IMG/VR virus record: IMGVR_UViG_3300024252_000004
Span: 331,128-395,127 of that record
Reading direction: 5' to 3' (one strand)
Length of the DNA stretch: 64,000 nt
Shown: positions 48,260 through 50,394 of the stretch, piece by piece
Layout: the number at the start of each line of letters is the position of its first letter
How positions within the stretch are numbered: the first letter of the stretch is position 1
The notes under the pieces: generated by a model
The model's database searches: none
Seen by the model: the letters and a program-made list of their open reading frames with translations, nothing else
Told to the model about the DNA's origin: nothing
Position numbers and translations under genes: made by a program

Positions 48260-49922
48260 AGCATTTTTAATTGGTGAGGATTGTAGGAAATCTATTCTGA
48301 GTGGTGTGAAAAAATTGGCAGATTTGGTTTTAGTAACTATGGGCCCAAAAGGTAAAAATGTAATCATAGGTCCCATTTCTCCTCAGCCAGGAGTCCCGCC
48401 GATAGGTGCTCCAATAAGCACTAAAGATGGAGTTACTGTCGCAAGAGCTATAACTCTATCCGATCCATTTGAAGAAATGGGGTGTCAATTAGTTAAAGAG
48501 GTAGCAGGAAGAACTTGTGATATAGCAGGCGATGGAACAACTACCTCTGTAGCCCTTACTTATGAAATATTCTCTAACGGCTTGAGTCTTATGGATAACG
48601 GTTACAGTGCTCTTGATTTGAGAGACGGACTGAACCTGGGACTTAAGTTGGTCCTTGCAGAAATCGAGAAGATGGCGAAGCCTGTTGATACGAAAGAAGA
48701 TCTTCTAAATGTATCTGTCATCTCCACAAACAACGACCCAGACCTTGGTGGCGTAATCGCTGAGGCTTATGAGCTTGTGGACAGAAATGGACTGGTAACA
48801 GCAGAGGCTGTGCCTGGAGTTGATAACGCTGCACGCCTCGTGAATGGTGTGGAGCTTAAGTCTGGCTATGTACATCCCGCATACCTTGATAGCGGAGAGA
48901 CTTCGGCATCTCTTGACAAGTGCTATGTTCTCATGCTTGACAGGGAGTTATCACATCTTCAGGAATGCGAAGACTTGCTCACAGCGATAGCAGGGAAGAA
49001 TGCAAGTCTACTTATCATTGCTAAGGATGTCACTAAGATCGCCCTGAAGACCCTTGTGCATAATCACAAACATGGAGTCCTTAAGTCCTGTGCAATTAAG
49101 ACTCCGACTTTTGGAGCTTACCAGGACAAGTGGGTAGAAGACCTTGCTGTTATCTTCGGCACAACTATCTTCAGTGATGAAAAAGGATTGCCTTTGTCTG
49201 AGGCTACAATAGAAATGCTCGGTTATGCTGAGTCAATTGAGGTTGGTCGTCACAGCACCAAGGTTACAAACCCAAGAAGGGACGAAGCTAAGATCAAGGA
49301 ACAAATGGAACTCTACGGAGAAGACCAAGCTCTTCTTCTTGGAGACAGAGAGCGATTCGATATCAGTAAGAGAAAGCAATTTCTTACGAGTCGTGCTGCC
49401 ATCATCACAGTAGGTTACTTAACCGAACTTGAGCTTAGAGAGAAAGGTGATAGAGCAGACGATGCAATGGCTGCTGTCTCCGCTGCCATTGAAGAAGGCA
49501 TTGTTCCTGGCGCAGGAATGGCACTATTCAATGCGGCAAGTAAAGTTGAGTTAGACAAGGTAGATGAGAAGTTTAGACCTGCGGTAGAACTATTGATAGG
49601 GGCATGTACACGTCCTGCTATCCAGATTTTAATGAATGCAGGTGAGGACGTTGAAACTATCCTTGCACAAATTGTATCTGCTGCTCCGAACGATTCGTAT
49701 GGCTATAACGCAGCCACTTGCGAGTTCGGAGACTTATTTGACATGGGCGTAGTAGACCCAAAGAAAGTAACCAGAACAGCCCTACAGAATGCATTAAGTA
49801 TCGCTTTGCTGTTGTTGACTACCGAAGCTGTAATTGTTGATAGACCTGACGATCCTTCGTCATGGCAGCCACCTGCTGGTTTCCGTTTACCCTCTGAAAA
49901 TGGTATGAATCATAAGTATTAA
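48252..49922 (+). CDS. groEL: chaperonin GroEL-like, paralog 2
   Basis: [40 protein letters not shown]; Pro-rich insert and non-GGM C-tail. Confidence 0.96.
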
Positions 49923-49923
49923 G

Positions 49924-50394
49924 ATGATTTGTTCTAAATGCGGAAAGAATAAAGATTTAGACCATTTTCATTTCAGGAAAGAAAGTGGAAAGTATCGAAA
50001 ACAGTGCAGGGATTGCTTTAATCAAAAGTGTTCAGAATATAGAAAGAAGAATTCTGAAACAATTAAGGCAAGGAACTACAAATACAGCAGAACAGTTGAT
50101 GGCAGATTTGCGAGCTTTAAGGCATTAGCCAAAACTAAAGGCATTGAGCAAAAATTAACAAAAGAGGACTTTGAGGAATTACAAACTAACCAATGCAACT
50201 ACTGTGGAGATAATTTCGATAGAGGTACCGGATATGGGATTGATAGAGTTGATTCTAATATTGGGTATTACAAAGAAAACTCCGTAGCATGTTGTAGCAA
50301 ATGTAATTTCGCGAAACACGAATTAGAATATAACGAATTTGTTCAGCATATTTTGAAAATGGCAAAACACATTGGGCTAAATCACAAATACTAA
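49924..50394 (+). CDS. HNH homing endonuclease-like protein
   Basis: CSKC..CRDC; CNYCG, GIDRVDSNIGY..ENSVACCSKCNFAK; same family as 20176. Confidence 0.82.
   Translation: MICSKCGKNKDLDHFHFRKESGKYRKQCRDCFNQKCSEYRKKNSETIKARNYKYSRTVDGRFASFKALAKTKGIEQKLTKEDFEELQTNQCNYCGDNFDRGTGYGIDRVDSNIGYYKENSVACCSKCNFAKHELEYNEFVQHILKMAKHIGLNHKY

Follow-up and report, generated by a model that had tools for sequence, protein, structure and literature searches.

A Nuclease Gene Proposed to Travel with a Gene End

In T4-like phages, free-standing endonuclease genes of the Seg and Mob families spread by intronless homing. In the ICP1 phages, nuclease genes have been located at the boundaries of exchanged sequence (PMC10448857). 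Fungal mitochondria harbor elements that go further: mobile open reading frames (mORFs; ORF, open reading frame) form "gene hybrids" with their hosts, as described for atp6, atp9, cox2, and nad3 of Glomus (PMC3630166; see also PMC7487136) and, according to the account of Paquin et al. (1994) cited in PMC3630166, for atp6 of Allomyces macrogynus. Here we describe a comparable arrangement in a bacteriophage, in which a small nuclease gene lies between groEL and recA and both the nuclease gene and groEL end in nearly the same six codons. The DNA analyzed is the terminal 64 kb (hereafter the window) of the virus record IMGVR_UViG_3300024252_000004, which is 395,127 bp long, derives from seawater metagenomes, and is rated 100% complete by CheckV.

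The likeness to the mORFs covers both the order of the parts and the pattern of divergence. In either case the body of the host gene is followed by a foreign in-frame C-terminal part, an endonuclease ORF, and a relic of the native C-terminus (the C*-terminal relic of the mORFs); in either case the relic is nearer to element-free relatives than is the inserted copy, and the differences are largely synonymous (PMC3630166). The host here is a bacteriophage rather than an organelle, the duplication comprises 6 codons whereas those of the mORFs extend over tens to about 90, and the nuclease is predicted to be a PacI-type His-Me finger, in contrast to the LAGLIDADG or GIY-YIG enzymes of the mORFs. 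Moreover, the nuclease ORF begins past the host stop codon and is unfused, and it is the nuclease itself that reads into the relic. With the free-standing nucleases of T4 and ICP1 the locus shares a small gene placed between or beside conserved essential genes, a sporadic presence, and borders of exchanged sequence; those genes, however, have been described as intergenic or gene-splitting. A limited keyword search of the phage literature found no description of a replacement gene end together with a relic. The locus is a clear phage example of a footprint so far known mainly from fungal mitochondria, and not a new principle.

We read the locus as a free-standing, mobile, homing-endonuclease-like gene for a predicted PacI-type nuclease, which would have inserted 18–21 nt before the stop codon of groEL, bringing a replacement tail and leaving the original one behind as a relic. 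The probability that we assign to this reading is roughly 0.8.

A Nuclease Gene between Two Copies of the GroEL Tail

The nuclease ORF of the window begins 1 nt past the groEL stop, lacks a Shine-Dalgarno sequence, and ends 10 nt before the recA start, which is the spacing found in nuclease-free relatives (table 1). The two tails share their stop codon and five of their six residues. At the DNA level 6 of 21 nt are different; one of these is the Met/Leu codon's first base, and the other five are third positions. The first-pass annotation, made from the letters of the window, had pointed out both tails and the recA ribosome-binding site behind the second one; a re-reading of the sequence found these and their coordinates to be exact. 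A DNA repeat finder did not detect a direct repeat of the groEL tail, the copies being too diverged, and the duplication is apparent only in the peptide and through comparison with relatives. groEL is complete without splicing and the nuclease ORF lies outside any intron or intein; an Rfam search of the region returned no structured RNA family, group I introns included. A read-through fusion of GroEL and nuclease was also considered and ruled out, as the frame of the nuclease ORF (49924) differs from that of groEL (48252).

Table 1. Features of the groEL–recA Region in Coordinates of the Window
Feature	Positions	Strand	Evidence
Second nuclease-like gene, 241 aa, directly upstream of groEL, stop overlapping groEL codons 2-3	47534..48259	+	PHROG 374 HNH endonuclease E 1e-24
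Phage groEL, 556 aa	48252..49922	+	Pfam Cpn60_TCP1 (PF00118) E 4e-53, residues 22-531; PHROG 5725 E 4e-123
groEL 5' ~330 nt, L006-like, adjoining the upstream nuclease gene; putative co-conversion tract	48252..48581	+	Informative sites
groEL 3' ~50 nt, L006-like rather than L004/L005-like; putative left-flank co-conversion tract, holding the functional replacement tail	49872..49922	+	Informative sites
Functional groEL tail GGT ATG AAT CAT AAG TAT TAA (GMNHKY-stop), copy probably brought by the cassette	49902..49922	+	Comparison with relatives
Free-standing nuclease ORF, 156 aa; zinc-ribbon-like CxxC...CxxC N-terminal part and predicted PacI-type His-Me finger	49924..50394	+	PHROG, AF2, Foldseek
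Relic of the original groEL 3' end GGG CTA AAT CAC AAA TAC TAA (GLNHKY-stop), last codons and stop of the nuclease ORF	50374..50394	+	20/21 nt vs L007
recA leader GGAGACATAA, Shine-Dalgarno GGAG at 50395-50398	50395..50404	+	Identical directly after groEL stop in L004/L005
recA/UvsX-like recombinase, 390 aa, ATG at 50405	50405..51577	+	Pfam RecA (PF00154) E 2e-52; PHROG 97 UvsX-like E 5e-61

A DNA search among isolated phages gave no related sequence, and the closest GroEL of an isolated phage is less than 40% identical, so that all comparisons rest on metagenome contigs, which are what the L numbers designate (L004, L005, L006, L007, L008, L010, L097, L105, L161, and others). No alternative genetic code was applied in translation. 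Loci of the family were retrieved with an alignment of the C-terminal 50 residues of GroEL; a scan with a full-length GroEL alignment was dropped, because it returned mostly generic GroELs of 35–38% identity, its patterns being the universal motifs.

In about 60 family loci from IMG/VR, groEL and recA are syntenic with a gap of 7–20 nt, and the junction is empty in L004, L005, L007, L008, and L097 as well as in about 50 more loci. In the closest empty-site relatives the groEL stop is 10 nt from the recA start (L004 and L005, with 89% identity in GroEL; L007, 79%; L008, 77%). These nuclease-free genes end in G(L/M)NHKY and pass directly into GGAG and recA, as the first-pass annotation had anticipated; in L004 and L005 the junction reads AAT CAC AAA TAT TAA GGAGACATAA ATG TCA GAA. 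From the AAT onwards through the recA start, the relic and leader of the window differ from this junction at 1 of 45 nt, and the last 21 nt of the nuclease ORF agree at 20 positions with the groEL end of L007 (GGG TTA AAT CAC AAA TAC TAA). The functional groEL end of the window, by comparison, differs from L004 at 9 of its last 30 nt, and the relic is nearer to element-free relatives than the inserted tail copy. Because of the match to L007 and the single difference from L004 and L005, the recA leader included, the downstream GLNHKY copy is by sequence comparison a genuine relic of the groEL 3' end, still joined to the recA leader. The proposal that the original end of groEL had become fused to the nuclease gene is thereby upheld.

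The distribution of the tail peptide agrees with this assignment. A word search with GroEL found thousands of relatives, the best 120 of them 44–89% identical and many on contigs of 100–400 kb. A (G/N)LNHKY variant forms the C-terminus of all 120, after a conserved GWQPPAGWR segment, and the family consensus is GLNHKY, with Leu as in the nuclease tail and not Met. For the nuclease, the 156-aa protein was used in an exhaustive, profile-free search, which gave 23,455 representatives at E <= 0.001, and the homology ends near residue 150. When the best 150 representatives were checked, an ending in HKY was found in 0 of 148 distant homologues, in line with the expectation that homologues elsewhere would lack NHKY; the sole similar ending among the 150 is the ...NNKY of L161, itself located at the groEL/recA site. 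Since the tail is kept in the GroEL relatives and absent from the distant nuclease homologues, GLNHKY is, on these alignments, a feature of GroEL and here a groEL relic, foreign to the nuclease. Two distant nuclease homologues natively end in KH-x-G-L-[LM], and for this reason the parentage of the G-L is ambiguous: the left boundary of the relic is uncertain by two codons, which may come from either parent. It is speculation that a native G-L would offer microhomology at the founding joint.

The GroEL subfamily, which is known from metagenomes only, ends in ...GWQPPAGWRxPxxxGLNHKY (window 49780-49922) instead of the usual Gly-Met-rich C-terminus, and this end is near-invariant in more than 100 relatives.

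Nucleases of the same clade occupy the same groEL/recA spot in three further phages from unrelated samples, L006, L010, and L161. Together with the empty junctions of close relatives, the recurrence of this nuclease at one site in four divergent phages bears out the view that the final groEL codons harbor the cassette. In L006 (nuclease 61% identical) the 22-nt relic and leader AAATCACAAATACTAAGGAGAC are identical to those of the window, and a 1-nt deletion just upstream of the relic shifts the frame, with the result that the ORF reads ...EQITNTKET and takes as its stop the TAA abutting the recA ATG. In L010 (58%) the ORF ends in ...HISSKY and only AAA TAT TAA GGAG is left of the relic; in L161 (51%) it ends in ...LKNNKY. 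Because the four nuclease C-termini can be aligned as far as ...K(M/I)A(K/N)(H/N) and diverge beyond, the relic is, as judged from these four sequences, not conserved as protein and merely what the nuclease ORF runs into. At the other end of the gene, the nuclease ATG lies 1–2 nt past the groEL stop or, as in the TAATG of L161, overlaps it, and there is no Shine-Dalgarno sequence in any of the four phages, which suggests translational coupling of the nuclease to groEL.

Putative Exchanged Tracts and Lateral Movement

To locate exchanged sequence, informative sites were counted at which the groEL of the window agrees with only one of L004 (empty site) and L006 (filled site), and the two ends of the gene were each compared with the gene body by a one-sided Fisher test. 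In the body (nt 330–1608), the window agrees with L006 only at 80 sites and with L004 only at 198. In the last 63 nt the corresponding counts are 10 and 1 (p = 5e-5), and in the first 330 nt they are 61 and 24 (p = 2e-12); on the far side of the downstream nuclease, the relic and the sequence after it resemble L004. The 10:1 tract speaks for the upstream GMNHKY copy being a replacement end brought in by the cassette, as had been proposed. The groEL of these marine jumbo phages is a mosaic with exchange boundaries at nuclease genes.

The divergence of the nucleases points in the same direction. Because their alleles are 49–59% identical in every pair of the four phages, while the C-terminal 164 aa of GroEL range from 87% identity (window and L006) down to 54–57% in other pairs, the nuclease phylogeny is, on these sequences, not that of the phage backbone. 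Mosaic groEL flanks and incongruent divergence are what homing with co-conversion predicts, and they argue against simple vertical descent. Along with the sporadic presence of the gene, they fit the intronless homing that the first-pass annotation had read from the two tails.

We propose that the mobile unit consists of three parts: a short 3' segment of groEL that ends, intact and in frame, in GxNHKY and a stop; the nuclease ORF, starting 1–2 nt past that stop or overlapping it and probably translated by coupling to groEL; and what is left of the original groEL tail, which now provides the nuclease ORF with its last codons and its stop. The GGAG leader is still the old one, at an unchanged distance of 10 nt from recA, and so the tight groEL-to-recA arrangement survives. 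During coinfection, the enzyme would cut the uninterrupted groEL-tail/recA-leader junction of nuclease-free relatives, and recombinational repair would copy the cassette together with about 50 nt of its left flank. Carriers would be immune, the insertion having split the site: the left copy of the tail is without the recA leader, and the right copy is without anything upstream of the GGN codon. The founding ectopic insertion would have survived only because it restored the GLNHKY tail, which is under selection.

Several observations count against homing as the explanation. The co-conversion tract at the 3' end is based on just 11 informative sites. The relic has TAC, as do L006 and L007, where L004 and L005 have TAT; it may be the recipient's own or may have travelled with the cassette. 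The nuclease alleles are old (49–59% identity) and the relics are decaying, and the element may have become inactive in part of the lineages. The protein lacks the classical catalytic His, so that activity is argued by analogy with PacI. Finally, four runs yielded no nuclease-free allele from this phage population: their contigs and reads (short, fragmentary contigs, 99–100% identical) contain no direct join of groEL to recA, and an empty allele may exist all the same.

Most of these points would also suit an old, vertically inherited insertion, by now inert or domesticated and precisely lost from most lineages, for example through recombination between the two tail copies, with no ongoing homing. 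Deeply diverged alleles, relics at differing stages of decay, the missing His, and the lack of an empty allele among the fragmentary contigs of the four runs are all as this explanation would have them. Yet vertical descent sits poorly with a groEL that is mosaic precisely at its two nuclease-proximal ends. It also sits poorly with the nucleases of the window and L006: the GroEL ends beside them are 87% identical, and still these nucleases have diverged as far from each other as in phages whose GroEL identity is 56%. The metal, zinc, and Tyr positions are, moreover, invariant in all four intact ORFs, and many independent precise losses would be needed. We therefore regard an inert, inherited insertion as unlikely, if the strongest of the alternatives to a mobile gene.

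Origin of the Replacement Tail and of the Relic

A further claim of the first-pass annotation was that the replacement tail had been synonymously recoded under selection for escape from cleavage. The claim is prompted by the two tails themselves, which keep 5 of 6 residues in spite of 6 differences in 21 nt, 5 of them at third positions. A tail with the same spellings, however, is found where there is no nuclease to escape from: the tail of the nuclease-free L008 is letter for letter the functional tail of L006, and the nuclease-free L105 has ATG AAT CAT AAG TAT TAA, as does the window. Across the family CAC/CAT, AAA/AAG, and TAT/TAC vary freely, purifying selection on the peptide would leave a donor-lineage allele with just such differences, and the insertion alone breaks any site that spans the junction. 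Given these spellings in genomes without the nuclease, the replacement tail looks like an ordinary allele of the donor lineage whose peptide is held by purifying selection. Recoding for immunity is thus not borne out, and we rate it slightly below even the inherited, inert insertion.

That the shared GxNHKY end is a coincidence, or a native and functional C-terminal motif of the nuclease, is very improbable. Only six residues are involved, and the two distant homologues ending in KH-x-G-L-[LM] show that G-L could be native; a match of 20 of 21 nt to a real groEL end, continuing into the recA leader, is nevertheless more than such an origin would give. The motif is, besides, frameshifted away in L006, degraded in L010 and L161, and found in 0 of 148 distant homologues. 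Least probable of all is an assembly chimera of two alleles: the record is indeed a metagenome assembly, but contigs from four other, independent seawater runs bridge both nuclease junctions with zero differences, three IMG/VR contigs are identical throughout the groEL–nuclease–recA region, and the same architecture recurs in three unrelated samples.

The 156-aa protein itself is on record in 14 contigs. A scan of metagenome contigs with the alignment of the four nucleases returned the contig of the window and two distant matches only.

A Predicted PacI-Type His-Me Finger

The nuclease matches PHROG 1035, 3322, and 3118, which are annotated as HNH or endonuclease VII, with E values of 2e-25 to 4e-12. 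Sequence searches of Pfam, NCBIfam, and the PDB returned nothing meaningful, and neither an HNH profile match nor a sequence-level match to PacI was among the results. In an alignment of 30 homologues, C91, D107, Y115, N119, N128, and K131 are invariant and C94, R108, C123/124, and C127 nearly so; the position of the catalytic His, at the end of strand 1, is taken by the nearly invariant R108. The four intact ORFs encode 154–159 aa. From the alignment, a Cys4 zinc site and metal ligands appear to be present, with Arg in place of the catalytic His.

The AF2 model (pLDDT 93) has strands at 105-108 and 120-123 and a helix at 125-131, forming a beta-beta-alpha-metal fold, and alignment and model together place the invariant Y115 in the loop between the two strands. 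The best PDB match in Foldseek is PacI (3ldy; E 1.2e-4, TM-score 0.37-0.41, 21% identity); further matches are the HNH domains of Cas9, Gme HNH, McrA, Hpy99I, and T4 endonuclease VII. PacI has a loop Tyr in place of the catalytic His and belongs to group 20 of the His-Me fingers, a group described as predominantly viral (PMC5714182). In the model, the protein of the window appears to resemble PacI (3ldy; PMC5714182) in its putative Cys4 zinc site, in the lack of a catalytic His, and in a conserved Tyr in the inter-strand loop; its context, in contrast, is that of a selfish insertion, whereas PacI is a rare-cutting restriction enzyme. The predicted fold and the invariant Tyr point to a PacI-type His-Me finger. 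Nuclease activity is plausible and, because the classical His is absent, is argued from the PacI analogy. The label "HNH" given to the gene at first therefore stands in part: the PHROG matches and the beta-beta-alpha-metal fold agree with it, and the missing match to any Pfam or NCBIfam HNH model and the Arg at the position of the catalytic His do not.

A paralogue of the nuclease is encoded elsewhere in the window (20176-20652, + strand). It has 158 aa, is 38% identical, carries the same CxYCG...LDRIDxxxGY...CCxxCN motif, and shares about 70 nt with the gene that follows; this small gene (20582-20887) encodes what we take to be a DNA-binding protein resembling the HU type.

A Conserved Junction as Proposed Target

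In more distantly related members of the family, the groEL/recA junction holds other genes. A distant relative of the nuclease (34–37% identity) lies 12 nt past the groEL stop, with no relic, in L130 (1189-1647), L132 (3166-3624), and L148 (3166-3636), and in L099 the junction holds a 302-aa ORF (3156-4064) with treble-clef zinc fingers (DUF4379) and weak matches of the DUF559/DUF2726 type. By the sequences available, the junction is a hot spot for insertion.

In a wider sense, fungal-type, tail-replacing mobile ORFs may also occur in phages, with a PacI-type (tyrosine) His-Me finger as the homing endonuclease. The target would be the conserved GroEL-tail/recA-leader junction of cosmopolitan marine jumbo phages, invaded by at least three unrelated nuclease genes, and the short duplicated tails could permit precise excision; for this generalization we see the balance as even. 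The locus preserves with unusual clarity how a selfish nuclease can get into the end of a coding sequence that is strongly conserved and probably important, and leave it intact: in related genomes the site is found both filled and empty, and relics persist at four stages of decay. It links the literature on intronless homing in phages with that on mitochondrial mobile ORFs, and it offers a candidate recognition site of about 25–40 bp for a small (156 aa) predicted PacI-type nuclease.

Neighboring Genes

The nuclease-like gene directly upstream of groEL is present in L006 (63% identity) and L005 (43%) and absent from L007 and L008; the motif of its 241-aa protein is without the Cys pairs. Just upstream of the nuclease/groEL block, an ORF of 180 aa (window 46927-47469, - strand) begins MKILSLDISSATIGWS and is presumably, judged by eye, a resolvase of the RuvC type. 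An abrupt exchange boundary is also visible at the start of groEL when L004 (1-98) is compared with L005 (2930-3000): the groEL sequences are 95% identical, and the approximately 50 nt before the shared groEL ribosome-binding site are wholly different.

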